64,000 nt of DNA. Origin: Ophelia neglecta. Taxonomy: Eukaryota. Made by a program: the position numbers and the translations under genes. Where the stretch lies: positions 5,704,001-5,768,000 of the forward strand of contig OZ260663.1 in the NCBI GenBank assembly GCA_965285935.1, written 5' to 3'. Each line of letters starts with the position of its first letter. Position 1 is the stretch's first letter. Below the pieces are notes generated by a model, which did not search any database, was not told the DNA's origin, and saw nothing but the letters and a program-made list of their open reading frames with translations. Shown here in pieces: positions 1,227 to 60,400 of this stretch.

Positions 1227-1864
1227 TCAACATAAAACTGCAAAAGTCTACAAATGATTGGACGCCAACTATTTACAGGTACTTAAACAGGTACGAGTAT
1301 AGTATGGGCCAGCATGTGACCATGAATCACCAGCTCATGGCAAGTCGTCTTGATTGCTAAATGATAAAGAGCAAACCAGAAGCGCATGCGCCGATCGAGT
1401 GATTCTGAATCTTTACACCTGCCAAGATCAAATGTTAAAGATAATACCCGGAAGATATTGCTAAGGCAAATTTACTGTTCAAGACATAGGTCACTGGAGA
1501 TTCGTTTTGCATAGCCGTTGTGCGTCAGAGTTGGAAGACAACAGGGACGGATTAGACAGGGTTATATTGTCTGGGTCACACATTCTTTACATACAAAATA
1601 CATGGCATCCCCGTTTCTTCGAACATGAATTCGAGAGGGTTTATAAGGTGCTTACCCAAGAATGTTGTCTATTTTTTCATATTTATTGTTTACAAATGCA
1701 TACTGAGTTGGAAGGCAATACAAATGCTCAAAGTTTGCAATCCAGCAGTTATATTAAATTTCATATTAGAAGGAATTACTGGTGTATCATGTTCTTATAG
1801 TAATAACACAATTCAATTAGTTGTAACGCTTCCTTAATGGCTCGAATGATAAGAAAGGCGATAG

Positions 1865-1938
1865 TTATATTTCTTCATATTCACCATCATTACCGTACGG
1901 TTTCATGCCTTCATAGGGATTGACCTTGTTGAAGTTTT
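1865..1938 (-). CDS. Gene A last exon, ENFNKVNPYEGMKPYGNDGEYEEI*
   Basis: tttccag acceptor, 74 nt to TAA; same length and near-identical in all four paralogs. Confidence 0.85.
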
Positions 1939-4900
1939 CTGGAAAAAGTATAATCAATACCGAATATTATCATCCGAAAAACTATTTAGACATTTTCATT
2001 GGTCACTATGACAAAAGTAGCATAAAAACACAGCTCAGAAATAATAAATACTTATGAATTTTTAAGTTAAAATCATAATCAAATGTCAGCTGACAACACT
2101 TCAGTGAAGCGCTTTTTCGGAAATATATTTAAGTGCTACATATAATTTTGAAAGTTCTGATTTAATACTCTTAAATAAAGGACAATTTTACTGATTATGT
2201 ACGCTTTATTATTCCATTGAATTGCTCAGTACTGCTTCACTTACCGTATTCCCTCGCAGATGGTTTTCTTGTCTCATAGGGATGAGCGTCAGCTTTCAAG
2301 GACTCGTCGTGTACATTGATATTGGGCGAGTTTTGCGCCAGGTTGTCTGCAGTCTGTCTAGTGTTATCCTCTAGATAGCAAGGAGCCAATTCATGTTGCG
2401 TTTTGAGGTTTGATGGTGATTGTGTCCTGCCCATATGCCTCCTACAAATTAAAGGTCAAATTGTTATAAAGACAACTCTTAAAGTCGCTGTAACTATTAA
2501 AGCATTGGTATACCAGCTAAGTTAAGTTAGTAACATTGATAAACATAAGCTACTCGTTGTCAAAGTATGTGATATTGACGTATATGATGTGTTATATGTG
2601 AGTCACGTCAATGTTAATTACTAGTCCGTGCTTATCTTCGGAAGCCGTTGTTGTTTATACTAAAAACTTCAATTCTTAGGTTTTGGAAATCTACATTTTA
2701 AAGGAAGATAAAATAATGAAGAAATATAAAAGGAAAGATTTAAACCCGATAAAGAAGGCAGCGACGACAGCGATCACCAGTATCACCACACCAGTAACCG
2801 CCCCAGCTATCACGCCGATCGTGTTGGGATCGCTGTTCTTGCTTGCGATGGGAGTGCTTCTCAATGCCTCAGTGGTGGATTCTGTTGATGTCCAAGCCTG
2901 GGATGAACCGCCTGAATCTGAGACATGACACAGTTGATTAATAAGAACGAGTTGATGCACTTGTCTCCTTAAATTTATCAAAATATCTCATAAAGTATAA
3001 CTCAAATTCTCATAAAGAATATCTCAAGGTCTCATTAGTATGTATCAAGGTCTCCATAAGTACATCTCATGGTCTGACTAAATGTATCTCAAATTCTCAT
3101 TAATGATTTCTCATGGTCTCATTAAGTATGCCTCATGGTCCTATTACGTATATCTCAATGTTTTATTTAGAATATCTTATGGTCTCATTAACAATATCCC
3201 ATGGTCTCATAAAGTATATATCATGGCCTCATTCAGTTCATCTCACGGTCTCTCTTGGTTTAAGTTATGGTTTGACAAAAAATGGGCAGAAACTTTTAAT
3301 TGAAACATTTGGTTATAGACAATGCTAACAATGTGCGTCTTAATTGTAAGCGCTGGCTACCTTGATCTTTGTAATTAAATTAATACATATACATAATACA
3401 TGTATATTGTAATTATACTTTTATATACCTCTATAATCAGACCACCTGTCAATTAAGACCACTAATATGAAAACAGTGTAGTATACTTTCAATGTTGAAT
3501 AACCTGCCTAAACAGACCACCCTCAAAATCAGACCAGTATTTACCATTCCTTTGGTGGTCTTAATTCACAGGTTTCACTGTACTATGTCTTGACAGTTTT
3601 AGCATCTAAGAGTTAATGGCCTTTTCTTGATTAATGATTTTACTTTGTCTGCCGGGTAACCTCTCCCGTTTTTACCACGTGTCAATAAGCTTTAGCACAA
3701 TCATTTATCTGAAGGTTTGAATCGGTCTAGATTACCTAAGGTTTTGGCGCTCATTGGATGTTCCTTCCCTGTGTATGATGATGGTCCCAAATAAACTGTT
3801 CCGTTTTCCAGTTTTCTATACGCTGTCAGTTTAAACAAGTATTCCGTATTTGGTTGTAGGTTGCCTACAGTTCCCTCCTGCCATTCACGATCTCTGTATG
3901 GTACGTTTACTCCCAATGTCCACACTGTGTTACTAGCCAGGCGGTAGTATATATGATACCCTACATATTTGACAGCTTCTGCCGAGACATTAACCCCTTC
4001 CTTCCACTGCCATGTTACAGACCAGGCCGTGACCTCGGAGGGAGTTTCTTTCACTACGTCACTTGTTCCAAATTGCATAAGCGCTATAAGTGAACGGTCA
4101 AATAAAGTACACTTTCTACAATAAAATTTGTCTATAAAGGGACTACCCCTATACCGAGAACACTGTTAGGGAGCACACACCGGAAATTCTTAAATCTATA
4201 AAACATTGAATGATAAATTATCGAAAAAAAAAAAATATATAACGTCGAGTTGAACCCGCATTATTTATTTCAGAGGAAGCATATGCGTTCCTATGATACA
4301 AACAATCATGCACGGAAGAAAGCAAACCAACACAAGACAACTACAAATAGAAACAATTGGCTGCTGGATATGTTACGATGTGTAACTAGTCCTATATTCT
4401 GCTGCCGCCGTTTAACTAGTATAACATATAACATCGCCTAAAACCTTGGGCCTTCATACTTGGCGCGACTGTACTGTGAATAAGGTATACATTGCACATC
4501 TCTGCTATTAGAAGTCTCATTAAAGGTCTTATTAGAAGTACTGCTGTATCGAAACAAAGTTAGCATAAAACATGCAGCCGACGACGATGTAAATTTCGAT
4601 ACTTCGAAGTGTATACTCAGCGACGGCGGGTGGGTGGAAGATACCGACACTAAGCAGAAGAAGACTATTAATTATTAACCAATATTACTTAACAACCAGG
4701 CTTATAATCATAGTAGTTTACACTCACGTAGTTTCACATCACATCTCTCTCCAATCCACCACTCCTCGTTAATGTTATAAGAGCAGCCCTCAGTACATAC
4801 GCCTGTATCTTTATGACAAGCCTTGTTCTTGCAGTGAGGACGACAACAATTCTCTCCCACAAGATCTTCGGCACATCCTGAAACTAACAACGGAGGGCTG

Positions 4901-19622: not shown

Positions 19623-20450
19623 CTTTCGATCGTTATAGAATATTCCAAGAGAAAGTCAAAACACTATACAATGATCAAACATGGCTTCCTTGTCCGTCCC
19701 CCAAGCAAAGATGGCGAGTCTATTTATACTGATTCGTGTGCCATCATTCGTAGCAAGGATATATGCCTTACCTGCTGATATTACCTGCAGTCTCTCTCTG
19801 AGATGTGACTTTCACGGTTGAGCACCTCCGATGAATATATTTACAGTTTTGAATCTCTGTTTTCATTGTAAGTTTTTTCATACTTCTATATACTGCACAT
19901 TATGATTTTACAGAACCGATTCATTATACATAGAACACGGAAAGTATCATTCAGTGTGTGCGACCAACTGTGATGTATTGCCGCTGTAAAGGGGCCATTT
20001 TACTTCTAACTATTAATTTGTACTTAACGTGGGGTATAGCACTACATGTATGTTTACTATAGAGAGAAAACCCGCCTTAGATTGTGTCAGGCATATGACA
20101 TGTACAACTAGTATCGAATCGGTATAAACATTGACAGAGATTCGACTATAGTTAGACTGTTATTATTTGAAAGATCTTGAAGCAGAGAAGAAAATAATAG
20201 TTTGCTTGCTTCCCCTGTATGTAAGGAGCCATTACAATAAAATGAATCTGACATTACAATCATTACTTCAGCGATGGGAACTAGATAAGTCATAAGATCA
20301 TATAGCCCACAGTTTAGTTTTAATGTTATACCGAAATATTGGAGGAACATATGTTAATCCTTGATTAGAAGGAGGCTTAGTCCGTCTATGAGATAGTGGT
20401 TTAATCGGGACATGGAATGCACATCGCAGTAATTTGTAGGATATACCTGC
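19623..20450 (-). promoter_or_regulatory. Conserved upstream/5'UTR block of the receptor genes
   Basis: Alignable by eye with 34706-35560, 49567-50440, 55869-56250 and weakly 51060-51330; includes a conserved AAGATGGC (YY1-like) motif and a CTGCAG|GTAA donor-like site. Confidence 0.4.
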
Positions 20451-20639
20451 CCGTGTGAAAGACACAGAAATAAAACTGACCAGGCAACATGGCCAAGGAG
20501 CATTGACTTATAAAACACCGGATTGCAGAAATAGTCTGCTCCCACTTTTGGCATTGATAGGCGTGCTTTATTCTTCATAATTTGGTATGGAAAGGTGTGT
20601 TTTGGAGTTACGTGGCAACACAATCCCAAAGTGCCAAAT

Positions 20640-22665
20640 ATGGAGGAAGATAGGGATCATCACGTCATAGAAAAAGGACAATGAGTCCATTCCAGATCTC
20701 ATCCAGAAAATGGATGATTTGACAAAGTCAGAACAATTTCGTGTTGCAGATGCAGGAGGATGAAACTGCAGTTATTGAGATTGAGAAATAGGAGCCTAAA
20801 ACTAGGATTGTTGCATTGGAGCAATATTCGCGAAAACCAAAATAGAAATACAAGGCATTCCTGAAACGAGGGCAGAAAACGTAAAAGGCAATTTGATGAA
20901 GCCATGTCAAACCATCGGAGTGCCAATGGTTGCGAAATTATTGAAGCAGCTCACAGAGTTCTACGTCCGAGCGGTGTGGCAAAAGAGGAGAGAAAGCCTT
21001 TGAAATTTGCGAGTGTGGCAAAGAGGAGAGAAGGGTATTAGAAATTTGCGAGTCGGAAGATGAAAGACTGCGTTCTCAGGGAATACAGGATGAGAAGATT
21101 CAACATCAACTCCCAAAGCATAGAACCGTCATTTGGAAATAATCATCTTGCGTCTGACAGGTAAATGGGAAGGCTTGAGCAGCCCAGAATAAGGAAAATA
21201 TCAGTTACTTGTGGACCCGTGATGGAAATATTCTGATGGGACGAAGGGAGGGAACGCCAGTCATAAGAATAAGCCAGGAGGAGGACTGCAGTATGATGGC
21301 TGGCCAAATAGGTGATTAGAAAATTAGTGTTATGAAAGAATCTCCGTATTACTCGCGAGAACAACTTGGAGATTTGAGTAAACAATCAGAATATACTCAA
21401 TCTCTTAATGTCTTGAACCTGTAGTATAAGCTTATTTAAGAAAAAACTTGAACTTGTCTTCTTATTGTGCGAGTTCCAAGAACTTTATACGTTTGTATTT
21501 GACATTATAGCTTTAAGAAATTTGGCTGGATGATAAACTTGAACCACTTGTCCCTGAGCCCAGCTATGAATTTATTACTAAACACAAGGCTGGTAGAAAA
21601 GAGGGGGGCCGTGTTGGTATTTATATTAAAACTTGAATCCGGGGTCAAAGGATTATAATCAGCACTATTTATAGGTAACCCAGTTATAATAACATACCTG
21701 AAGTAAGTTTATACCACCTACCGTAACGGTATGAATATTGTTACACAAAAGGCTGAGGCCAACTTTTGGGAAGATAAATAATAATATATCAAAGGTTTAT
21801 ATGAAGAATACTTGGTCAAATATCACACAGGTTCTAAACAAAAAGACACCAGTTACCATTCAAAATATTTCCTTCGATGAAGACGGGAGTAAACTATATA
21901 CGCTTAAAAAATATCTAATTCATTCAATTTTTATTTCGATGATATAGGTCCTGCATTACCCCCGGTCCCTAAATAGTTGTGTTGATTACAGAGAATTTCC
22001 TCACAACCCATCAATAAACAGCCTATATAAGACTTATACCAATTGTGATGAAATTCGTAGGGTTGTTGATATACATTGTAATGAAGCCAAAAACAAGTAC
22101 TGGCTATGATAACATATCTCCCAAATTGATATAACAAACCATTGATCGCATTGTTTTACCAGTGACACACATTTTTAACGATATGGTAAAGAATGGCATA
22201 TTTCCTGAGGATTTAAAAATTTCGAAGGTATTACCTATCTTTAACTTTAACGGATGGAAATAACAACACGAGTTAGTCGTTTATAACGATACCATATTCT
22301 TGGTTAATACATTACTTCATATAGCTTTCGGAATAAAGTACTTTCGGAATAAACCCATGCTTATGTTTTCACACCTATTAAATTGTCTTAAAGCTTACCT
22401 CTAGCCACTTTACCCTAGAAATTGTCTTCCTATGTAAATCACAATATCTGGAAGAACCAGTAATTAGCCATGATCCTGTTAAACTATTCAAGTAAACCAC
22501 TGTCCCCACCTTGTTGACAATATCCGTACCAAATTAAAGACTTATGGTGACCTTGCGTTTTCACACTGTGGCCCAAAGGTACGAAATGATTTCCCTTTAG
22601 AACCCAGATCCCAATGTTGCTATTGAAACGATTACTTAAAACATGTCTATTGAAAAAAGCATATA
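20640..22665 (+). mobile_element. Decayed, internally deleted CR1/L2-type LINE (copy 1)
   Basis: ORF1-like LWTRDGNILM; endonuclease-like FDIIA..IWLDD..GRKEGGRVGIYIK; RT-start KPKTSTGYDNISPKL..GIFPEDLKISKVLPIF; 3' KTYGDLAFSHCGPK. Confidence 0.7.
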
Positions 22666-24321
22666 AAGTATAATACCAGTGTTAAATCCACTATTGTTGT
22701 AGTTAATTTACTCTAAATGTTAGATTTTATATGGCAGGTGTATTACATATATGATGTCTTTAACGCTTACTGTTATTCAGGAATGCATTTGTTTACATTT
22801 TGAATATATATTGTATTTGTACCGAGGTTCGTACTGCAGCTTACATCTCTTATCGACTTTGAACAATTTCCTTAATAGACAAGCTAACTTGCCAAATCAG
22901 CCACAGGCAATCATTGTAATATCGGACACAGTGACGCCCCTTATCTGTCGAGAAAATAAATCAGCTAGCATAGAAACAAGACCAAAGCAACGAGACTGCC
23001 TTATCCATTAAGCAGGCGAACATGCCACGAATAAATCTTAACTTTTGATATCAACAGTCTTGCGAATATAGATATGGGAATGTCTACGATCTCTACTGAT
23101 AAAAAGCAATTCACAGATGACTGCTTTCTAAGAAGTGTGATATTATTGACGTCGTAGCCCTTGTGCGTTTGGTTCCTACAATTATATACATGTCAATGCA
23201 GTACACTACCTGCCTCACGATGATTACATATCTACCCCTTTGGGGATGAGCACCAAGCCGTGATACAGGGCAACTGGCATTGGTAAAAAGTTAGTAAGAA
23301 TATCTGCTTCCGATCATAAATTTTGTTGTTTCGTGGTATGTTGCATTTTGCGCCAGAACTTGCGAAACTTGATTTGGCTTCAGGCTTTTCATACTAGCAA
23401 GCCAGGCAAACTACATATTGATCCCATTGGTAAGAACACAGAAGAGAAGTCATCCCTGGCAGCGTTCATGACTGAGATTTCTTTGCTTTGTTATAACTGC
23501 TGGGATCTGATGATGCAGACCCCACAGTTTGACCCGATCATGACGCTTTTGAGTATTGTAAAAGGTACTGTTTTGACATGATGGTTGTAGATGGTCTTGC
23601 GGAACGGGCTTAAAAAAATATGGCAGTACTGTGAACAGATAGCCGGAACCCCGACACACAGCGACAACATTATCCCAGTGCAAAATGGCGCCTTGCTGGA
23701 CTAATGAAAGCTGACCTTAACGTCTAACATGTTCCACTGTTTCTAGATATCTGTATGTCATTTTACTCTAAAATAAGGACTAACATGTTTCATTTTTATG
23801 AACATATTTAATCTACTTTCACACCTCTGACCCAAGAAATAAAATATATCATGACTGACGATGATGTATGCTTTCCGCAACATTCCATAATTTAGCTTCA
23901 GGTTGGAGTTCTATGGCACACAAAACTAACTGAAGTAGACGCTGTGGTGACGAGGACGGAGGACCAACACGGGCTACTTATCTAACTTGGTGATTTGTTC
24001 TCCTCTATTTAGCTCGACCTGTTAGCGCTCCGGTTTTAACTTTACTTATTTATTCTCTTGCCTTTACTTGACATTTATGATATAACAGATAAAGTTCCCA
24101 TTTGATTTAAAAACTCGAAAACAAATACTAGATAAAACAGTACAACAGGCAATAACATCTAAATTTTATTTTACACATTTGTGCACAACACAGAAATTTG
24201 TTTGATAAATGAACAGCTATACTTATTATTACACAACGCTGGCAATTAATTTGCACCGAGATCAATTAATATCTAATAGACAGATAACTGCTCTCTTACT
24301 TAAGATGTACAAAGGTATTAG

Positions 24322-24395
24322 TCAAATTTCTTCATATTCACCACCATTAACGTGCGGTCTCAGGCCTTCATAGGGATTGACCTTGTTGAAGTTTT
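24322..24395 (-). CDS. Gene B last exon, ENFNKVNPYEGLRPHVNGGEYEEI*
   Basis: 74 nt; YxxL-x8-YxxI. Confidence 0.85.
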
Positions 24396-27300
24396 CTGGA
24401 AAAGTTGCCTCAGCACTTGGTTATTTGTGTTACTATCAATGGATTTTGAATCAGTTAAATTCACAATCAAATGCCATCTTACAGCAATTTCTTTCTCGGA
24501 AATATATATAAGGGCTACGAATATTTTCAAGAGTTTTAATTTAATACCGATGCTACTTTAATGTATGCAATAACTTCTGTCAGTGGGCTTGACTGATTAA
24601 GCGCATATACATAGATTTTTATATCAAAATATAAAAAAGAAATTAATGATAAATACACACTATTATTCCGTTGAACTGCTCAGTATTGCTTAACTTACCG
24701 TACTCTCTCGCGGATGGTCTTCTTGGTTCATAGGGGTGAGAAACACATGGCAACGGCCCGTCGTGTCTATTGATATTAGGCACAAATTGCGCGGGATTGT
24801 CGTTCGTTTTTTGGGGGTTTGTCTCTAGATCGTCAAGGGGCAAGTCGGTTCGACCTTTGACCCTTAATAGTGCTTGTGTCCTGCCAATACGCCTCCTACA
24901 ATCGAAATGTCAAATTGTCATGACTTCAAACTTCCCTCAAACTATTAAAGTATAAGCATACCAGTTAAATTTGGGATATTAAAACTGATAAACATAAGCT
25001 GACTCATTGTCCAAGCATGTGGTAATGACATATATTTGTGATAACATTAAGTTACACATAATTACTAGTCCGAAGGTATTGTCGGCCGCCGGGGTTGCAT
25101 ATGTTTAGACTATTTTCCGTTTAACTCTAAGGTTTTTGAGGAATCCGTACATCAATTAAAAGGAAATAAAATTAAATGAAGAAATATATTTATATATAAA
25201 TAATGTTTTTAACCCGATAAAGAAGGCAGCGACGACCGCGATACACAGTATCACCACTGCAGCCACCGCCCCAGCTATCAGGCTGGCCGTGGTGGGGAGG
25301 AAGTTCTTGCTTGTGATGGCAGTGTTTGTGAATGTCGGAGTGGTAGCTGTCGTTGATGTCCAAGTCCGAGGTGACCCGCTTGATTCTGAGAGTTGGCACG
25401 ATTGATTAATTAGAATTGTGAGATACACATACGATTCTGCTTGTTTACTTAAAAACATACAATACTCTGAACTCTGATTGGTAAATTGAAAATTATACTT
25501 ATATAAAATGACACAACTAATTAATGTCGATACATGAGCGGTCATATTAGGAAGCATCTCACAGGATTCACTATGCGTGAGCAAATAATTTATATGGAGG
25601 TTTTGCATCGCTCTAGTATACCTAAGGTTGTGGCACTCATTGGATGTTCCTTCCCTGTGTATGACGATGGTCCCAAATACACTGTTCCGTTTTCCAGTTT
25701 TCTATAAGCTGTCAGTTTAAACAAGTAATGCGTGTTTGGTTGTAGGTTGCTTACAGTCCCCTCCTGCCAGGCACTCTGTCTGTATGATACGTCTACTCTC
25801 AATGTCCACGCTGTGTTACTAGCCAGGCGGTAGTATATATGATACCCTACATATTTGACAGCTTCTGCCGAGACATTAACCCCTTCCTTCCACTTCCATG
25901 TTACAGACCAGGCCGTGACCTCGGAGGGAGTTTCTTTCACTACGTCACTTGGTCCAAATTGCATAAGCGCTATAAGTGAACGGTCAAATAAAGTACACTT
26001 TCTACAATAAAATTTGTCCATAAAGGGAATACCCCTTTACCGAGAACACTTTTAGGGAGCACACACCGGAAATTCTTAAATCTATAAAACATTGAATGAT
26101 AAATTATCGAAAAAAACAAACAATTATAACGTCGAGTTGAACCCGCACTATTTATCTCAGAGGAAGCATATGCGTTCCTATGATACAAACAATCATGCAC
26201 GGAAGAAAACCAACACAAGACAACTACAAAAAGAAACAATTGGCTGCTGGATATGTTACGGTGTGTAACTAGTCCTATATTCTGCTGCCCCAGTTTAACT
26301 AGTATAACATATTACATCGCCTAACACCTTGGGCATTCATACTTGGCGCGACTGTACTGTGAATAAGGTATACATTGCACATCTCCGCTATTATAAGTCT
26401 TATTAAAGGTCTTATTAGAAGTACTGCTGTATCGAAACAAAGTTAGCATAAAACATGCAGCCGACGACGATGTTAATTTCGACACCTCGAGGTGCATACT
26501 CAGCGACGGCGGGTGGTAGATACCGACACTAATCAGAAGAAGACTATTAATTATTAACCAATATTACATAACAAGCGTGCTTATAATCATAGTAGTTTAC
26601 ACTTACGTAGTTTCACATCACATCTCTCTCCAATCCACCACTCCTCGTTAATGTTATAAGAGCAGCCCTCAGTACATACACCTGTATCTTTATGACAAGC
26701 CTTGTTCTTGCAGTGAGGACGACAACAATTCTCTCCCACAAGATCTTCGGCACATCCTGAAACTAACAACGGAGGGCTGAACTTACAACAAATAGCTGAT
26801 TTCAGTTGACACAATTAAGAGATGACGCAATAATTGATCAATTAAATAGTGTAACAACCAGATGCGCTAGTCTTTGCCGTGAGAAAGGGGTGACCCGACT
26901 CTTTGTATGACGTAGTTCCGATGTGTATTTTACCGTCAGTAGTCTTTCGGTACACCTTAATGTCAAACTCGTAATGTGTATCTGACCGTAGGCGACTCAC
27001 AGTCCCCTCTTGCCATTCTGTCTCTCTGTATGACACGTTAACCCCTGTGCGCCAATCTGCGCTACCAGGCTGTCTGTAGATTATATGGTAACCCACATAG
27101 GTCACGGCCTCCTCCGGGACGTTAACCCCTTCTTTCCACCGCCATGTTACAGATTGGGGTGTGATTCTAACTGGAGATTTATCAACCTCGTCTTTTGGCC
27201 CGAACTGCATTTGTGCTATGAGACATAAATTAAAAGAGAAATCAATCTTACATACATAATACTGGAAGTGGGTGATTGGATATACGAATTTAAAAATATA

Positions 27301-30300: not shown

Positions 30301-33300
30301 TAATACTCACGTATTTCTATATCACACCTGTTTCCCACCCACCAGGTACCGGAATCATCGAAAGTGCACCCGAAAGTACACACTCCCGAATTCTTGTCGC
30401 ACCTGTGTTGCTTACAATAGGAACTGCAGCAGTTTTCACCAACGAGGCCTTCATTGCACCACAGAGCTAATACATTTTGCATACAATGAGAACAGAAAAG
30501 CAGTGTTATTTAAAGTATGTTGAATTTGAAAACATAATGCATTGGATTTAAAGGTCACTGGAAATGTTTTATAATATATCAGCTACCTGACTAATAAATT
30601 TGTCTTAGGATATTATTTAAATTAAATACTAATATCACCTGTACAATAAGAAAGAGCTTGTAATTCTTATAATAAAATGAATCAATTAAATTTGATTAAT
30701 AAACAGATGGTGTCTATGTTTAATAATTCAAAATCTTGTTCCACAGTTAAGACACTTAAGACACTTACAACTCTGAGGTAGTGTTCGAGCTGAAAGTGCG
30801 AACGACGGAGCTCCAATGTATGTTTGTCCGTTTATAGATTTCCTGTAAGCCTTCAAATCAAACTGGTAGTCAGTGTTTGGCTGTAGTTGGTCCACAGTCC
30901 CATTGATCCATGTATTATTTGTGTATGGCACGGTAACCCCGAGGGTCCAGTTAGATGTATCCCCCAACCGGTAGTATATGTAGTAGCCTATGTAAGGTGC
31001 GGCCTGCTCTGATATGTCTGCACCTTCTTGCCATCGCCATGTGATAGAGTGGTTTGTTATTATAGCTGGGTATTTGTCTACGGTGTCTGCGGCATCAAAC
31101 CCCATAATGGCTACGGAAATAACATTTATTTATTCAAGTGTACTATACCTAATGTAGTTGCCTATATTTGACTGTGTGTACGGTAACATAAGTTAGTAAG
31201 AGTTTTTTCACAATCTGAGAAAGCATTTTAAAATGTTTTAAAATATGTTAAAAATGTTGCAGACTAAACAATTAGCAGAAGTGACAGCTTTGACTAAGCC
31301 AGTAAAATCACACTATTATCTGTAGGCAATACCAGTCATTATTGATCTCAGATCACTCACGTATTTCTACTTTACACTCGTTTCCAATCCACATCGGTCC
31401 GTCGATATCTTGGAAACAGCCGTCAGTACAGCTACCGTCATTGTCACACGAGTCATCTTTGCAGTGCCCACTACAACAATTTGGTCCAAAACTTCCAGGC
31501 TTGCACCCTGTAAAGTTAAAACCATCGTTTTATCCACCGTATACAACGCACTGCAGGGAAACCGGTATCTTCTCAGGACTCATCACATCACGGACATAAC
31601 CTGGGTGTTTTGAAGGTGGTGGTAACTATAAATCACAAGAATTTGCTAGAAAATATTTCTTAATATAGTAAGAAATAGTGTAGACTAGGTGTTTTGACCT
31701 TACATTTTAGGAGTTTCATTAATTTTGGTGATACTTTTGTATATAACGCAATATTTGGCAAACTAATGCTTTTCTCGAGAAGTATAGTATTTATTTTTGT
31801 TTTTTTTTTGTATTGTAACTGTGAACATTTGTTTTATGTCAATTTGGTCGAAATATTAAGGTAGATTACTATTCGAGAAATGTTGCTTTCAATTTGAACA
31901 TATCGTTTACGCCTATGTCTCGCATTTTTTCCTTCAGAATCTTCTCCCCATTTTTTAAAGAAATTTCAGAGAACACGCGCTCTACTCCGGTCGGCTTGTG
32001 CAGATTGTTCCAGAGGTTTTAAATGTTGCTTGCTTCGAGAACACGTAGGTCACGGACTCCACAAACAATAGCGGGCGGCAAGTGGTTGAGGTTTTTTTCG
32101 GGAAAGGCCTATTCCTAGACTTTTCAACAGCTTATGATACCGTAAAATATTGTATTCTCTCATTGAAATTGGAAAAATATGGCATTAGGGCTGTGGCATT
32201 GAATTGGATTAGGAGCTATTTATACAAAAGAACTCAGCTTATAGATATGACAACAATACATACACATACCGTGGACAGATTCATTATTGGCTTTGTAAAT
32301 AAACAGATTTATTCATTACAAGCATAGCAAGTGCAAATCTGAGAATAACAAAATAGAAATAAAGGACGGTGCATAGTATTGGATGACTTTTTAATACAAT
32401 GACCTGGGTTGGGTTTCAGGAGAAACAGTGTGTGATTGAACCACTGGGGTCCTGAACCATTTATTTGACCATGATGGAATCTACACAAGATACTGACAGC
32501 TACTGACTTCTTTGTGCATTCATTCATATAGTTTATATAGTTTCATATTACATATGACATAGTTATTAATATTTATTTATTTTGTTTGCTGTTTTTTTAA
32601 ACACGCAAGGGTAAATGGTCCTGTAACACATAATAGCATTTTTGGCATTCGGTTAGGGTTATAGCTGGTTTCTAGCTGGCTTCGTGGTGTTCTAGGATTG
32701 TTCTTGGAATTCGCGAGGACAATCGTTGAGGTGGAAAATTATTTTGATCTTGTTCAAAATATTTTTTCTTTGGAGTCTCCGTATGAGAAGAATGTTCGAG
32801 CTGGTGTAGATTCTCGCTATTCGAGAAGCGTACAGTAATCGAATAGATATGAAAATGTGGCTTTTTGAAAAGTGAGCGCATAGGGTACTAGCTATTTAAG
32901 AAGCATTCGACATATTCAGAAGCGGCTTATTAAGCATTCGGAGAGCTTCCGGGAAAAAACCAATATGATAATTAACCAGCCAGCCGTTCGAGCAGTACTC
33001 TTCGTTAGGGCCTTTCGGGACCAACATTTTAAGGCATATTCTAGAAACTTTCGGAACCCCAAACGTTTCGGTGTGACAGGGCCATAGGATAAATAGGTGG
33101 CAAAGATTTGTTATGCAAGCTACAATTCTGTACGGTTTCATTTTGCGAGGAAGAGGCTGCAACATCAGCTACCATCATAGTTTTAGCATACTCCAGAAAT
33201 CAAGCGAAATCAAGTGACGACTTGATCGGATGTAAGCTTGAACAATAGACAATTATCAAGTATTTTTCAGGCATCACCTCATCTATTATCTGAGAATATA

Positions 33301-34705: not shown

Positions 34706-35759
34706 TTTTCGATCGTTATCGAATATTCCAAGAGAAAGTCAAAACACTATACAATGACCAAACATGGCTTCCTTGTTCGTCCCCTAAGCAAAGATGGCGA
34801 GTCTATTTATACTGATTCGTGTGCCATCATTCGTAGCAAGGATATATGCCTAACCTGCTAATGTTACCTGCAGTCTGTCAATGGTAGAGATGTGACTTTC
34901 ACGGTTGAGCACCTCCGATGAATATATTTAAAGTTTTGAATCTTTGTTTTCATTGTAAGTTTTTATCATACTTGGGTTAACTGCACATTATGATTGTTCA
35001 GAACCGACATGTTAGAAAGCATCATTCAGTGTGTGCGACCAACTGTGATATATGGCAACAGACGAAGCCGTGAAAGAGCTCCTAACTATTAACTTGTACT
35101 CAGTATAGTATTACTTAAACATGGAGTATAGCACAACATGTATGTTTACTGTAGAGAAAAAACCCGCCTTAGATTGTGTCAGGCATAGGACATGTACAAT
35201 TGAACTAGTATCGAATCGGTATAAACATTGACAGAGATTCGACTATAGTTAGACTGTTATTATTTGAAAGATCTTGAAGCAGAGAAGAAAATAATAGTTT
35301 GCTTGCTTCCCCTGTATGTAAGGAGTCATTACAATAAAATGAATCTGACATTACAATCATGACTTCAGCGATGGGAACTAGATAAGTCATAAGATCATAT
35401 AGCACACAGTTTAGTTTTAGTGGTATACCGAAATATTGGAGAAACATATGTTAATCCTTGATTAGAAGGAGGCTTAGTCCGCTCTATGAGATCGTGGTTT
35501 AATCGGTATCATTGGACATGGAACGCACATCGCGGTAATTTGTAGGATAAACCTGCCCGTGTGAAAGACACAGAAACTGACCAGGCAACATGGCCAAGGA
35601 GCATTGACTTATATAACTTTTCACCGGAACATTTCACCGGATTGCAGAAGTAGTCTGCTCCCGCTTTTGGCATTGATAGGCATGCTTGATTCTTCATAAT
35701 TTGGTATGGAAATGTGTGTTTTGGAGTTACGTGGCAACACAATCACAAAGTGCCAAATA

Positions 35760-37790
35760 TGGAGGAAGATAGGGATCATCACGTCATGGAAAAAGGACAC
35801 TGCGTCCATACCAGATCTCATCCAGAAAATAGATGATTTGACAAAGTCAGAACCATTTGGTGTTGCAGATGCAGCAGGATAAAACTGCAGCTATTGAGAT
35901 TGAAAAATAGGAGTCTAATACTAGGATGGTTGCATTGGAACAATACTCGCGAAAAACAATATAGAAATGCATGGCATTTCTGAAACGAGGGTGAAAACGT
36001 AGAAGGCATTGTGATGAAGCCATGTCAAACCATCGGAGTGCCCATGGTTGCAGATATTATTGATCACATCACAGAGTTCCACGTCCGAGCGGTATGACAA
36101 AAGAGGAGAGGCCAAGGGCATAAGTAGTGACAATTGCGCGTCGGAAGATGAAAGACTGCGTTCTCAGGGAATACAGGATGAGAAGAGTCAGCATCAACTC
36201 CCAAAAAATAGACCCGTTATTTTCTGCAGAGCGTTTTTCTTTGGAAATATTCATCTTGCGTCTGACAGGAAAAAACTATTTAGGAAGGCTTAAGCAGCCC
36301 AGAAAAAGGAAAATGTCAGTTTCTTGTGGACCCGTGATGGAAATATTCTGATGGGACGAAGGGAGGGAGCGCCAGTCATCAGAATAAGCCAGGAGGAGGA
36401 CTGCAGTATGATGGCTGGCCAAATAGGTGATTAGAAAATTAGTGTTATGAAAGAATCTCCGTATTACTCGCGACAACAACTTGGAGAGTTGAGTAAACAA
36501 TGAGAATATACTAAATCTCTAAACGTCTTGAACCTGAATGTATAAGCTTATTAAAGAAAAAAACTTGAACTTGACCTATTATTGTGCCAGTTCCAAAAAC
36601 GTTATACGTTTGAATTTGACATTTTAGCTATAGAAGAAATTTGGCTGGATGATAAACTTGAACCACTTGTCCATGAGCCCAGCTATGAATTTATTACTAA
36701 ACACAAGGCTGGTAGAAAAGAGGGGAGCTGTGTTGGTATTTATATTAAAACTTGAATCCGGGGTCAAAGGATTATAATCAGCACTATTTATAGGTAGCCC
36801 AGTTATAATAACATACCTGAACTAAGTTTATACCACTTACCGTAACGGTATGAATAGTGTTAAACAAAAGGCTGAGGGCAACTATTGGGAGGATAAATAA
36901 TAATATATCAAAGGTTTATATGAAGAATACTTGGTTAAATATCACACAGGTTCTAAACAAAAAGACACCGGTAACCATTCAAAATATTTCCTTTGATGAA
37001 AACGGGAGTAAACTATATACGCTTAAAACATATCTAATGCATTCAATTTTTATTTCGATGATATAGGTCGTAAATTACCCCGGTCCTTAAATAGTTGTGT
37101 TGATTACAGAGAATTTCTTGACAACCCATCAATAAACAGCTTATATATGACTTATACCAATTGTGATGAAATTCGTAGGGTTGTTGATATACATTGTAAT
37201 GAAGCCAAAAACAAGTACTGGCTATGATAACATATCTCCCAAATTGATAAAACAAACCATTGATCACATTGTTTTACCAGTGACACACATCTTTAACGCT
37301 ATGGTAAAGAATGGCATATTTCCTGAGGATTTAAAAATTTCGAAGGTATTACCTATCTTTAACTTAAACGGATGGAAATAACAACACGAGTTAGTCGTTT
37401 ATAACGATACCATATTCTTGGTTAATAAATTACTTCATATAGCTTTCGGAATAAAATACTTTCGGAATAAACCCATGCTTATGTTTTCACACCTATTAAA
37501 TTGGCTAAAAGCTTACCTCTAGCCACTTTACCCCAGAAATTGTTTTCTTATATAAATCACAATATATGGAAGAACCAGTTATTAGCCATGATCCTGTTAA
37601 ACTATTCAAGTATGCCACTGACCCCACATTGTTGACAATATCCGTACCAAATTAAAGACTTATGCTGACCTTGCGTTTTCACACTGTGGCCAAAAGGTAC
37701 GAAATGATTTCCCTATAGAACTCAGATCTCAATGTAGCTAATGAAAAGATTACTTTAAACATGTTTTTTGGAAAAAAAGCATATAAAGCA
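35760..37790 (+). mobile_element. Decayed CR1/L2-type LINE (copy 2, co-duplicated with the gene unit)
   Basis: Near-identical to 20640-22665; FDILAIEEIWLDD, KPKTSTGYDNISPKLIKQ..GIFPEDLKISKVLPIF. Confidence 0.7.
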
Positions 37791-39609: not shown

Positions 39610-39683
39610 TCATATTTCTTCATATTCACCACCATTACCGTGCGGTCTCAGGCCTTCATAGGGATTGACCTTGTTGAAGTTTT
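39610..39683 (-). CDS. Gene C last exon, ENFNKVNPYEGLRPHGNGGEYEEI*
   Basis: 74 nt; ITAM spacing. Confidence 0.85.
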
Positions 39684-42600
39684 CTGGAAAAGTTGCCTCA
39701 GAACTTGATCATTTGTGATAGTATCAATGGATTTTGAATCAGTTAAATTCACAATCAAATGCCATCTTACAGCAATTTCTTTTTCGGAAATGTATATAAG
39801 GGCTAGGAATATTTTCGAGAGTTTTAATTTAATACCGATGCTACTTTAATGTATGTAATACCTTCTGTCAGTGGGCTTGACTGATAAAGCGCATATACAT
39901 AGCTTTTTTATATCAAAATATAAAAAAGAAATTAATGATAAATACACACTATTATTCCGTTGCACTGCTCAGTATTGCTTAACTTACCGTACTCTCTCGC
40001 GGATGGTCTTCTTGGTTCATAGGGGTGAGAAACACATGGCAAGGGCCCGTCGTGTTTATTGACATTAGGCACCATTTGCGCCGGCTTGTCGTCCGTTTTA
40101 TTGGGGGTTGTCTCTAGATCGTCAAGGCGCAAGTCGTGTTTACTTTTGACACTTGATAGTGCTTGTGTTCTGCCCATACGCCTCCTACAATCGAAATGTC
40201 AAATTGTCATGACTACAAACTTCGCTCAAACTATTAAAGTATAAGCACACCAGTTAAATTTGAAATATTAAAACTGAAAAACATTAGCCGACTCATTGTC
40301 CAAGCATGTGATAATGGCATATATTTGTGATAACATTAAGTTACACATAATTACTAGTCCGAAGGTATTGTCGGCCGCCAGGGTTGCATATGTTAAGAAT
40401 ATTTTTCCGTTTAACTCTAAGGATTCTGATGAATCCGTACATCAATTACAGGGAAATAAAATTAAATGAAGAAATATATTTATATATAAAAATTTTTTTT
40501 AACCCGATAAAGAAGGCAGCGACGACAGCGATGGACAGTATCACCACTGCAGCCACCGCCCCAGCTATCAGGCCGGCTGTGGTAGGGATCACTGTAGAGA
40601 CACAGTTCGTGCTTGTGAAGGCAGTAATGGTGAATGTCGGATTGGTAGCTGTCGTTGATGTCCAAGCCCGAGGTGACCCGCTTGATTCTGAGAGTTGGCA
40701 CGATTGATTAATTAGAATTGTGAGATACACATGCGACTCTGCTTGTATACTTTAAAAAAATCTGAACTCTGATTGGTTCATTAAATATCATACTTATATA
40801 AAATGACCCAACTATTTAATGTCAAAACATCAGCGGTCATATTAGGAAGCATCTCACAGGTTTCACTATGCGTTAACAAACATTTATATGACGGTTTGGC
40901 ATCGCTCTGTTATACCTAAGGTTGTGGCACTCATTGGATATTCCCTCCCTGTGTACGACGATGGACCCAAATACATTGTTCCGTTTTCCAGTTTTCTATA
41001 AGCTGTCAGTTTAAACAAGTAATGCGTGTTTAGCTGTAGGTTGCTTACAGTCCCCTCCTGCCAGGCACTCTGTCTGTATGATACGTCTACTCCCACTGTC
41101 CACGCTGTATTATTAGTCTGGCGGTAGTATATACGATACCCCACGTATTTGACAGCCTGTCTCGGGACCATAAACCCTTCCTTCCACCGCCATGTTACAG
41201 ACTGAGACGTGATATTGGCGGCAGTTTCATCAACAACATCACTTTCTCCGAATTGCATTATGGCTATAAGGACAAATTTAACCTTAAGTACAATATTAAA
41301 TTTGTCGATAATTGGAGTAATTCCATGTCCCCATAATTGGTAGCGGATACAATTCCCGGAAACGGCTTTGAAAAGAGGTGGCCTCAATATTAAGCGAAAA
41401 ACAAAAACGAAATGATAATTCAGCCTACAAACCCAAATAATATTTCGGGCTGAACCTGAACTATTCATGTCTGAAAACATGGTCTACATACGATGCAGGA
41501 AAGCCGACAACAAGTGACATAACCAGAGACACTGTTCCGATGGTTAAAGTATGTTGCTAATCTTGTGCCGCCGCCGTTTAACTGAGGTGATGAATACATT
41601 CGTTCGCCTAACACAGGGGACAATGATACTTAACTAGACACGAATGTACTGTGAATAAAGCAGCAAGCCACCGCCCTTCCCGATCCGATCTCATTTACAT
41701 GCCAACACTTACCACTTTAATAACTCTACTAACCTGACTATAGTAGAACCTCACCCCGAAATTACTAACACTGAAGCAATAATCGTCAACAACGACACCT
41801 CGAAACGCATTACATTACCGAGCTGCTAACCTGGACTTTGTCATCTGTTAGGTTTTGTTTGTCATTTTGAATATCACATCTTCAGCAAGAGCTTCTTTAA
41901 TGATATACCAGTAATATATAACAGTTGCATTCATTATTAGCGTTGTTTACACTCACGTAGTTTCACATCACATCGATCTCCAATCCACCACTCCTCGTTA
42001 TTGTTATAAAAACAGCCCTCAGTACACACGCCTGTATCTTTCTGACAAGCCTTGTTCTTGCAGTGAGGATTGCAACAATTTTCTCCCACAAGACCTGTGG
42101 CGCAACCTGAAACTAACAACAGGCATTGGTGAACATATAACATGTATGTTGAACTATACTATGAATGGCCAAATAAATAGTGCACTAACCAGATGTGTCC
42201 GTCTTTGCCGTGAGGGCTCGATGGCTCGACTGCATGTATGACGTATGTCCGAAGTGTAATACGCCGTCCGTAGATTTCCTGTACACCTTTATGTCAAACT
42301 CGTACTCAGTATTTGGCTGTAACTGGTTGACAGTCCCCTCCTGCCATTCTCTCTCTCGGTATAAGACGTCCACACCTATTGACCACTTAGTGTCACTCCG
42401 TTGTCTATAGATTACACGGTATCCCACATAAGTAACGGCTTCCTTACGGAGGCTAACGCCCTCCTTCCACTGCCATACCACCAATTGGGACGTGACTCTT
42501 ACTGGGCTTCGATCTACGAAATCACTGGATCCGAACTGCATTTTTGCTACGAGACATAATGTGAAATATAGAGATCAATCTCACGGAAATCACCTTAATA

Positions 42601-57462: not shown

Positions 57463-60400
57463 TCATATTTCTTCATATTCACCGCCATTACCGTGCGGTC
57501 TCAGGCCTTCATAGGGATTGACCTTGTTGAAGTTTTCTGGAAAAGTTGCCTTAGAACTCGGTTATTTGTGATACTATCAATTTATTTTGAACCAGTTACA
57601 TTCACAATCAAATGCCATCTTACAGCAATTTCTTTCTCGGAAATATATATAAGGGCTACAAATACTATCGAGAGTTTTGATTTAAACTGACACTACTTTT
57701 ATGTATGTAATAGGCCTACCTTCTGTCAGTGGGCTTGACTGATAAAGCACACATACATAGATTTTTATATCAATATATAAAATAAATTAATGATAAATAC
57801 ACACTATTATTTCGTTAAACTGCTCAGTATTGCTAAACTTACCGTACTCTCTCGCTGATGGTCTTCTTGGTTCATAGGGGTGAGAAACACATGGCAAGGG
57901 CCCGTCGTGTCTATTGATATTAGGCACAATTTGCGCCGGCTTGTCGTCCGTTTTATTGGAGTTTGTCTCTAGATCGTCAAGGGGCAAGTCGGTTTGACCT
58001 TTGACCCTTAATAGTGCTTGTGTTCTGCCCATACGCCTCCTACAATCGAAAGTTCAAATTGTCATAAGTCCAAACTTCGCTCAAAATATTAAAGAATTAG
58101 CCTGCCGGTTAAAGTACGTACATCAATTACAGGGAAATAAAATTAAATGCAGAAATATATTTATATATAAATAATGTTTTAACCCGATAAAGAAGGCAGC
58201 GACGACCGCGATACATAGTATCACCACTACAGCCACCGCCCCAGCTATCAGGCCGGCCGAGGTAGGGATCACTGTACAGACGCAGTTCGTGCTTGTGATG
58301 GCAGTGATTGTGGATGTCGGAGTGGTAGCTGTCGTTGATGTCCAAGCCCGAGGTGACCCGCTTGATTCTGAGAGTTGGCACAATTGATTAATTAGAATTG
58401 TTAGATTCTGCTTTTATACCTAAAAAAAATACAATACTCTGAACTCTGATTGGTTCATTGAAAATCATACTTATAAAAAAATGACCCAATTATTTAATGT
58501 CAAAACATCAGCAGTCATAATTATTAGGAAGCACATGATTTACTATGCGTTAACAAACATTTATATGACGGTTTGGCATCGCTCTGTTATACCTAAGGTA
58601 GTGGCACTCATTGGATGGTCCTTCCCTGTGTATGACGATGGTCCCAAATACACAGTTCCGTTTTCCAGTTTTCTATAAGCTGTCAAATTAAACAAGTAAT
58701 ACGTGTTTGGTTGTAGGCCGCTTACAGTCCCCTCCTGCCAGGCACTCTGTCTGTAAGATACGTCTACTCCCACTGTCCACGCTGTGTTACTAGTCTGGCG
58801 GTAGTATATACGATACCCCACGTATCTGACAGCCTGTTCCGGGACAATAAGCCCTTCCTTCCACCGCCATGTTACAGACTGGGACGTGATATTGGCGGGG
58901 GTTTCATCAACAACGTCACTTCCTCCGAATTGCATTATTGCTATAAGGACAAATTTAACGTAAGTACAATATTATAACTTAAATTTGTCGATGGTAGGAG
59001 TACGTCCATGTTCCCATAACTGGAAGCGGACACAATTCCCGGAAACACCTTCGAAAAGAGGTGACTCTCTCTATTAAAAGAAATCAATACACAAAATGAT
59101 AATTCATATTCCGACCCAAATATGTCGGGCTGATCCTTTTGAATATCACATCTTCAGCAAGAGCTTCTTTAATTATATACCAGTTATATATAACAGTTGC
59201 ATTCATTATCAGCGTAGTTTACACTCACGTAGTTTCACATCACATCTCTCTCCAATCCACCACTCCTCTATAATGTTATAAGAACAGCCCTCAGTACATA
59301 CACCTGTATCTTTATGACAAGCCTTGTTCTTGCAGTGAGGATTGCAACAGTTTTCTCCCACAAGACCCACGGAGCAACCTGAAACTAACAACAGGCAATT
59401 GTGAACATAGAACATATTGTTTATAGAAGTTAGCGAAAATGTATGTCGAAACTATTAAAGAATTATACTATGACTGGCCAAGAAAATAGTGCACTAACCA
59501 GATGTGTGTGTCTTTGCCGTGAGGACTGGATGACCCGATTGTTTGTATGACGTATGTCCGAAGTGTAATACGCCGTCCGTAGACTTCCTGTACACCTTTA
59601 TGTCAAACTCGTATTCAGTATTTGGCTGTAACTGGCTGACAGTCCCCTCCTGCCATTCTCTCTCTCGGTATAAGACGTCCACACCTATTGCCCACTTAGT
59701 GTCACTCGCTTGTCTATAGATTACACGGTAACCCACATAGGTAACGGCCTCCTTTCGGAGGCTAGCACCCTCCTTCCACTGCCATACAACCGACTGGGAC
59801 GTGATTCTGACTGGTTTTCGATCTACCAAATCACTGGATCCGAACTGCATATTTGCTACGATACATAATGCGAAATGTAGAGATCAATCTCACGGAAATG
59901 ACTTTAATATAAAGTTGCATGTGGGGAAGAGGACACGATTTTGGGTATATGCTGTAGTGTTTGTCCTTTCCCACACCACTCTCAAAGCCAGACACACACA
60001 TTTCGATTGTACATATTATATACAAAATAAACAGATTTGAGCAGCCACAGTTATTCAGAAGTGACTGTTTCGTGATTACACCAGGTGGTTTTATGTAAGC
60101 CATTCTGTGTATATCTTTTACAAATCCACACATGACGCTGCTTAGATTGCTCTCTGTGACCGCACCAAGTTAATACCAGTATGGCATTCTTTTTAAGGCT
60201 AGTGCAAACATATACAACTAATAAATAACCCTCTAACTCTCCATGACCTATGGATGAACACGTAGATAAATTCAGAACGATAACATATTGACATTATTTG
60301 ACATAGACATATCCAAATATATAGATTCGAAAGACCCATACACGTCCTAATCAACGAACAATTAAGGGAACACCACGATGTAAAACATTCAAATGAATTC

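Follow-up and report, generated by a model that had tools for sequence, protein, structure and literature searches.

The window analyzed here, a stretch of 64,000 nucleotides (C5:5704001-5768000 of a 762-Mb animal genome), carries four genes, A to D, on the minus strand. Their three terminal exons, a stalk/transmembrane exon, a penultimate cytoplasmic exon, and a last coding exon, are intact in all four genes. These features are listed below in window numbering.

1865..1938, minus strand: last coding exon of gene A, encoding NFNKVNPYEGMKPYGNDGEYEEI and a stop; this copy is absent from the first-pass annotation
2245..2441, minus strand: penultimate cytoplasmic exon of gene A, 197 nt, 51% protein identity to gene B
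2746..2917, minus strand: stalk/transmembrane exon of gene A, 172 nt
24165..24170, minus strand: AATAAA of gene B, a likely polyadenylation signal, 151 nt past the stop
24322..24395, minus strand: last coding exon of gene B, 74 nt including TGA, from translation and splice sites
24325..24372, minus strand: ITAM-like motif YEGL-x8-YEEI of gene B, from minus-strand translation
24396..24698, minus strand: last intron of gene B, 303 nt, phase 1, GT..AG, from splice-site reading
24699..24895, minus strand: penultimate cytoplasmic exon of gene B, 197 nt, 65 full codons, starting with RRIGR and holding HPYE
25214..25385, minus strand: stalk/transmembrane exon of gene B, 172 nt, with the hydrophobic segment LIAGAVAAVVILCIAVVAAFFIG
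39610..39683, minus strand: last coding exon of gene C, encoding NFNKVNPYEGLRPHGNGGEYEEI and a stop, from translation and splice sites
39988..40184, minus strand: penultimate cytoplasmic exon of gene C, 197 nt
40504..40687, minus strand: stalk/transmembrane exon of gene C, 184 nt
57463..57536, minus strand: last coding exon of gene D, peptide identical to that of gene C, from translation and splice sites
57843..58039, minus strand: penultimate cytoplasmic exon of gene D, 197 nt
58184..58367, minus strand: stalk/transmembrane exon of gene D, 184 nt

Terminal exons and receptor architecture in the window

The last exon of gene B contains the final two bases of a Glu codon, the peptide NFNKVNPYEGLRPHVNGGEYEEI, and the stop; both motif halves are housed within a single 74-nt exon of a large multi-domain receptor. 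Minus-strand translation of 24372-24325, 39660-39613, and 57513-57466 gives YEGLRPH(V/G)NGGEYEEI with the stop immediately after, which reproduces the placement of YEGL-x8-YEEI in genes B, C, and D in the first-pass annotation. The B peptide differs from the other two solely in the spacer residue, which is V in B and G in C and D. Genes B, C, and D conform to the strict pattern YxxL/I-x6-8-YxxL/I; the gene A motif is YEGM-x8-YEEI, with a YxxM first site that falls outside this pattern. An ITIM is defined by S/I/V/L at position −2 of YxxI/V/L. This position is occupied by N at the first site and G at the second in the window genes, residues that are unsuitable, and we rejected an ITIM reading of these genes; the S-E-Y-E-E-I second site of six distant paralogs (see below) would fit an ITIM.

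Genes A to D agree in intron phases and in exon lengths (197 and 74 nt), with TAC G|GTAAGT as the donor and TTTTCCAG|AA as the acceptor in every copy. At the end of the gene B penultimate exon, EY is followed by the first base of a split codon, G|AA, which encodes Glu, and the sequence Y-E-N-F is created across the predicted junction only on splicing. The earlier report of a junction YENF thus agrees with the exon ends as read here, the splicing itself being predicted from sequence, and the HPYE that it placed upstream is found in the penultimate exon. A 23-residue hydrophobic segment followed by RRxGR is located two exons 5′ of the motif exon, with the cytoplasmic exon starting as RR(I/M)GR (RHMGR in gene A). 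Given the predicted splicing, the last exon lies ~65 residues and the motif ~75 residues past the hydrophobic segment, which places the motif in the predicted cytoplasmic tail. An AATAAA/ATTAAA-type hexamer is also found 151 nt past the stop in gene C and 144 nt past it in gene D. Read-through of the last intron gives GK and 18 unconserved residues in genes B to D and GK followed by a stop in gene A.

The ectodomains of A to D are composed of four to five FN3-like exons that alternate with Cys-rich exons, and genes A and C harbor a discoidin/F-type-lectin-like exon; the F5/8-type-C-like and fn3 matches obtained with Pfam on the exon ORFs are weak and mostly under the curated cut-offs. A lectin-like exon for gene B was not seen in the window, and the N-terminal domain of this gene may have been lost. 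Gene D extends past the window edge. The tail exons gave no match in Pfam, nor did the 23-residue last-exon peptide in a PDB sequence search or the 65-residue exon in an ESM Atlas look-up. As one component of a best reading that we put forward as tentative in its entirety, A to D would be tandem paralogous genes for type I membrane receptors, in which a discoidin/F-type-lectin-like domain is combined with Cys-rich EGF-like exons that alternate with FN3 exons, and each would have a tail of ~90 residues past the membrane span.

The intergenic segments at 20108-21385 (A/B) and 35205-36500 (B/C) share a common repeated unit with near-identical ORFs; the spacer is thus part of the duplication unit, which measures ~15-18 kb. 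A reverse-transcriptase-like ORF is located 5′ of gene B at 32082-32327 on the plus strand. A search of sequencing runs for the locus returned three, all from one sample; each covers introns and intergenic regions evenly and thus derives from DNA, and no RNA run was among them. Contigs from two runs of one sample join 24403 to 25207, omitting 803 bases that include the entire penultimate exon; the joint has about a third to a half of the local depth, and its shorter side extends for 30 letters only. We rejected this joint as a splice, since one end stops 8 nt short of the acceptor and the other is 7 nt inside the upstream intron; it may reflect a deletion allele, a paralog, or an assembly-graph artefact.

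Conservation of the last exon in the window and on C5

The last exon had been described in the first-pass annotation as almost invariant in B, C, and D. The three copies are indeed near-identical, with the one V/G difference, but, the duplicates being young, their introns and 3′ flanks match just as well (86-95% identity), and the invariance of the exon among B, C, and D is therefore uninformative. Gene A and 19 distant paralogs provide the informative comparisons. A and B share 91% identity over the last exon; over the transmembrane exon the figure is 79%, over the cytoplasmic exon 68%, over the last intron 55%, and over the 3′ flank 40%. Synonymous divergence of A from B to D is 0-0.08 in the last exon versus 0.36-0.42 in the neighbouring exon (Poisson p ~0.03), and in view of this low value short-tract gene conversion or nucleotide-level constraint may account for a part of the exon identity in the window. 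The bare motif is common by chance, with 21 six-frame matches to the ITAM pattern in the window, 18 of them outside genes A to D, and a chance expectation of ~0.013 (about 1%) per 90-codon tail; the case thus rests on conservation and context. The proximal cytoplasmic exon (24699-24895, 39988-40184, and 57843-58039) is 89% identical between B and C, as against 93-95% for the flanking introns, and its pN/pS exceeds 1 (1.5 for B-C and 3.5 for C-D, from small counts); this exon may be under relaxed or diversifying selection.

A weak protein match identified a further gene, located at C5:98.05 Mb; its ectodomain is mucin-like, its cytoplasmic exon likewise ends TAC G|GT, and its last exon reads ENFNPVNPYEGL-x11-YEEI and a stop. 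The 762-Mb genome was then scanned with a degenerate DNA pattern that encodes the core of the exon, N-x-x-x-VNPYEGL, which gave 22 sites versus none for a reversed control; 21 of the 22 correspond to last exons on C5, and a second pattern yielded two further last exons for a total of 23. One site on C2 and two on C1 were discarded as chance matches. All 23 last exons are found on C5 and on one strand, with four in the window, four at 98.05-98.29 Mb, and 15 at 96.56-96.68 Mb, and an AG precedes each of them, with one common phase. At 15 of the 17 non-window loci of the first pattern, we located a penultimate exon that has 60-65 codons and ends in Tyr (Cys in one copy) and G|GT; at the other two, L032 and L037, a TEYG reading in the upstream ORF matches the family. 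An alignment of 19 penultimate-exon tails reveals that H-x-Y-E and the final E-Y are nearly invariant against an overall identity to gene B of 15-23%. The genome contains no processed retrocopy with joined exons, and a word-based protein search with the 19-sequence tail profile, covering proteins of 36-114 residues, returned nothing at E ≤ 0.01. A literature search on the motif strings found nothing relevant. Eight metagenome matches to the exon core lie inside long bacterial ORFs (…NLNEVNPYEGLDPRF…) of GC 0.46-0.54 and were dismissed as coincidence. These bacterial ORFs, which we take to resemble SusD/RagB-type outer-membrane proteins, contain NLN(E/D/T)VNPYEGLDPRF and can mislead searches by pattern.

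The junction Y-x-N and VNPYEGL are present in all 23 genes, and the only residue change in VNPYEGL is the L to M substitution of gene A. At least 10 synonymous state changes versus one nonsynonymous change are found over these seven codons (p ~1e-5 under neutrality), a comparison drawn from paralogs of one genome. The retention of splice sites and phase, together with core variation that is nearly all synonymous across 23 paralogs, argues that the exon is read in this frame and is under selection at the protein level. This codon-level pattern is the main support for the predicted splice, for which the case is strong, and we consider the last exon very probably real and translated.

The second motif has a different distribution. 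EYEEI and a stop are found in 10 of the 23 genes, with spacers of 8 (the window), 9, or 11 residues, and six of these ten genes have an extra tyrosine in the spacer. The other 13 genes end early as ...NISGNIRA, with a stop in place of the tyrosine codon and a relic YEEI downstream. The relic YEEI or its stop is altered in 6 of the 13 untranslated copies versus 0 of the 10 translated ones (p = 0.017); the sequence thus decays where untranslated and is intact where translated, which places selection on EYEEI in the translated copies only. The 13 short-tail paralogs (L030-L040, L070, and L075) are arranged in tandem ~10 kb apart at C5:96.56-96.68 Mb, and the short tail ends ...NPYEGLNISGNIRA and a stop (TAA or TAG), followed by the decaying relic “IKYEEI.” As judged from these tails, a natural conversion of a two-site to a one-site form, followed by expansion, would have given rise to the short-tail group. 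Joint conservation of both tyrosines, as anticipated for an ITAM, is found in four of four window genes and does not extend to the family, where the first is retained in 23 of 23 and the second in 10 of 23. The predicted family-wide constant core is therefore the junction Y-x-N plus NPYEGL, with an optional second site, and the classical 6-8 spacing is, on this sampling of tails, particular to the window subfamily. One locus of this region, L036 (C5:96635452-96638483), has two lectin-like exons ~300 nt 5′ of the cytoplasmic exon and lacks most of the stalk/transmembrane exon; it is a pseudogene or else a deletion variant that has no membrane span.

Candidate functions of the tail and its putative partners

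pYEEI is the preferred ligand of Src-family SH2 domains, and pYxN is that of Grb2. We consider it probable that the last exon serves phosphotyrosine-dependent SH2 docking of some kind. The best single reading, plausible but short of an even case, is that this docking module acts as an ITAM-like tail; recruitment of a tandem-SH2 kinase by the tail is possible, and we hold this part slightly less firmly. Phase-1 splicing would generate Y-E-N-F at the junction and place NPYEGL after it, with EYEEI closing the protein after a spacer of 8 residues. In the proposed mechanism, ligand-driven clustering would allow a Src-type kinase to phosphorylate the tail tyrosines, and the resulting pYEEI and pYEGL would bind SH2 domains. 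The YxxL-x8-YxxI spacing of the window subfamily could then form a joint ITAM-like site for the tandem SH2 domains of a Shark-type or Syk-like kinase, with the junction Y-x-N as a candidate Grb2/Drk-type site; the outcome is predicted to be activating. That the tail drives phagocytosis, as the first-pass annotation had entertained, is speculation, and we regard it as unlikely at best.

The genome encodes candidate partners for such a tail. At least 86 SH2 matches were found in the genome. One 685-residue ORF has the Shark/HTK16 architecture of SH2, ankyrin repeats, SH2, and tyrosine kinase, and a Syk-like candidate locus (C8:14.979-14.986 Mb) contains two complete SH2 exons 1 kb apart, with a same-strand tyrosine kinase exon 6 kb further 3′; the two represent candidate kinases for the tail. 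The Shark-type ORF is located at C8:29347500-29352500 (positions 1242-3296, minus strand). Its first SH2 match begins four codons before the ATG and is without the first 18 model positions, and a small upstream exon is therefore likely. A p85-type ORF is also present. Among four long SH2-bearing ORFs inspected for a Src-family kinase, none was confirmed as one; all are SOCS-box/SOCS-like or SH2-only. SH2 matches also occur in tandem clusters, with ~20 at C2:96.40-96.66 Mb (260 kb) and seven at C12:55.50-55.53 Mb, and about a dozen partial matches are located at C5:3.28-3.61 and 4.36 Mb, 1.3-2.4 Mb from the window; these clusters suggest a lineage-specific expansion of SH2 genes.

The designation “canonical ITAM” of the first-pass annotation can be retained in part. 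The pattern fit in B to D, the predicted cytoplasmic position, and the candidate kinases in the genome favor it; the occurrence of EYEEI in a minority of the family, spacers that range from 8 to 11, and the YEGM of gene A do not. The close rival of the ITAM-like reading is a phosphotyrosine scaffold in which the sites act independently, each on a single SH2 domain, with no tandem-SH2 kinase on the pair. Here, the Y-x-N would recruit a Grb2/Drk-type adaptor, NPYEGL one specific reader, and the C-terminal YEEI a Src-family SH2 domain. The absence of the second motif from 13 of 23 genes, set against a first motif and junction Y-x-N common to all, together with spacers of 9 and 11, extra spacer tyrosines in several genes, and a YEGM in gene A, suggests that the selected unit may be single sites, and the tandem expansion of 13 first-site-only paralogs argues that a single site is evidently useful. 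N-P at positions −2 and −1 and G at +2 of the first tyrosine are invariant, which is more than an ITAM needs and hints at a more specific reader. YxxM is a p85-type site, and the YEGM of gene A would be of this type in a genome with a p85 gene. Arguing for the ITAM-like reading, the window subfamily has spacing in the classical 6-8 range, both of its sites are YxxL/I in B to D, and Shark-type and Syk-like kinases are encoded in the genome; furthermore, the functional ITAM of Draper has a spacer of 11 residues, so that spacers of 9 to 11 are compatible with tandem binding (PMC6219719). We favor the ITAM-like reading and consider fully independent sites somewhat unlikely.

Less probable still is a role in trafficking or anchoring, in which YEGL and YEEI would be YxxPhi signals for adaptor-complex sorting or endocytosis and the free -E-E-I a class III PDZ ligand. 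Both motifs do fit Y-x-x-hydrophobic, the last three residues fit an acidic-x-hydrophobic carboxyl terminus, and the stop is placed directly after EYEEI in 10 of 10 long tails, a position that a functional free end would explain; the ectodomain, moreover, has a lectin-like domain, and many such receptors are endocytic. The x positions of YxxPhi tolerate almost any residue, however, which leaves the invariant E, G, and N-P unexplained, the at least four conserved tail tyrosines are in acidic contexts typical of kinase substrates, and the carboxyl-terminal motif is dispensed with by 13 paralogs. Finally, it is very improbable that the exon is unused or the genes are silent duplicates, with transcripts that end in the last intron (...EYGK and a short extension) and a motif that arose by chance and was preserved through recent duplication or gene conversion: the sequencing runs over the locus, all of them DNA, the youth of B to D, the low synonymous divergence from A, as under gene conversion, and the unrelated pattern matches in the window would accommodate this, but the exon is far better kept than its flanks between A and B, 19 distant paralogs share the exon, phase, and upstream donor with synonymous-only variation in the core, the read-through frame is unconserved and stops after GK in A, and a poly(A) signal lies 3′ of the exon, 151 nt past the stop in both B and C and 144 nt past it in D.

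Relationship to known ITAM receptors

Vertebrate antigen and Fc receptors are the best-known users of ITAM signaling, and few invertebrate cases have been tested, among them Draper with Shark and oyster CgIgR with Syk. In Draper, Src42A phosphorylates an ITAM (YxxI/L-x6-12-YxxI/L, with the tyrosines 15 positions apart) to which Shark binds directly, and other tyrosines of the protein also matter (PMC6219719). Draper, CED-1, and MEGF10 (PMC6219719, PMC4503800) resemble the predicted receptors described here as type I receptors with a repeat-rich ectodomain and a tyrosine-rich tail. Draper shares with them an ITAM-pattern pair accompanied by further tyrosines, a Shark-type kinase is encoded in the present genome, and the 11-residue spacer of Draper is that of some of the paralogs. 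The ectodomains are distinct, however, in that those of Draper, CED-1, and MEGF10 comprise EMI and Nimrod-type EGF domains and those found here comprise discoidin/F-type-lectin-like, Cys-rich, and FN3 exons; in addition, the motif is found here at the extreme carboxyl end on an exon of its own, unlike in Draper. Pfam identified no EMI or EGF family on the scanned exon ORFs, and neither cytoplasmic exon contains an NPxY (CED-6/GULP) motif, since P and Y are adjacent in the V-N-P-Y of the tail. No sequence similarity to Draper was detected. We therefore rejected a Draper homolog on the basis of the ectodomain and the lack of NPxY, and the comparison with Draper made in the first-pass annotation survives as an analogy only.

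The oyster receptor CgIgR has five Ig domains and an ITAM of sequence YTEL-x7-YEKL, with experimentally tested binding to CgSyk (PMC6994640). It is likewise an invertebrate type I receptor with an ITAM-pattern tail and is proposed to function in pathogen recognition through Syk. It differs from the present genes, which have no Ig domain in the ectodomain, a different motif, and a tail whose signaling role is predicted. On paper, the tail appears functionally similar to those of Draper and CgIgR; it belongs to neither family, as the ectodomains differ and a sequence similarity was not found.

The vertebrate ITAM chains CD79a/b, CD3, FcR gamma, and DAP12 share the YxxL-x6-8-YxxI arrangement and an acidic residue before the second tyrosine, and the CD79a ITAM reportedly also starts with YEGL. 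These chains are short adaptors that pair with ligand-binding chains, in contrast to the placement of the present motif on the receptor itself. The ITAM of vertebrate adaptor chains is split between two exons; the present motif is contained within one exon, and there is no detectable homology. The 13 short-tail paralogs are reminiscent of the hemITAM receptors Dectin-1 and CLEC-2 in combining a lectin-like ectodomain (seen in one locus) with a single YxxL. In the hemITAM receptors, which are C-type lectins of type II, an acidic stretch leads up to the tyrosine. The proteins predicted here are of type I, have a discoidin/F-type-lectin-like domain, and carry N-P in front of the tyrosine, and a hemITAM assignment was rejected on the basis of the missing acidic stretch and the type I topology.

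A broader reading of these data, which we regard as doubtful, is a lineage-specific, tandemly expanding lectin/EGF/FN3 receptor family of at least 23 genes on one chromosome with its own terminal-exon cassette (Y-x-N, NPYEGL, and EYEEI); the family would tune its signaling by alternating between an ITAM-like tail with two tyrosines and a tail that a single nonsense mutation has reduced to one. If true, ITAM-type Shark/Syk signaling would have been invented independently on a receptor that is neither Ig-type nor a Draper relative, and natural “on” and “trimmed” tail variants would exist side by side, with the window genes as the classical-spacing version. A large, fast-duplicating lectin-like receptor family in which the tyrosine cassette is conserved would supply a further, independent invertebrate case of an ITAM, and members with versus without the second tyrosine motif would constitute a natural experiment on the contribution of that motif. 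The extracellular and proximal cytoplasmic parts diverge fast and the last exon is fixed, a pattern expected of recognition receptors that share one pathway.

Finally, a gene at C5:100.83-100.86 Mb is characterized by alternating Cys-rich and FN3-like exons and a transmembrane exon, followed by tyrosine-phosphatase exons (DYINASYI and KCxxYWP). This type of ectodomain thus appears to be wired to either a phosphatase or a tyrosine-motif tail within one genome.
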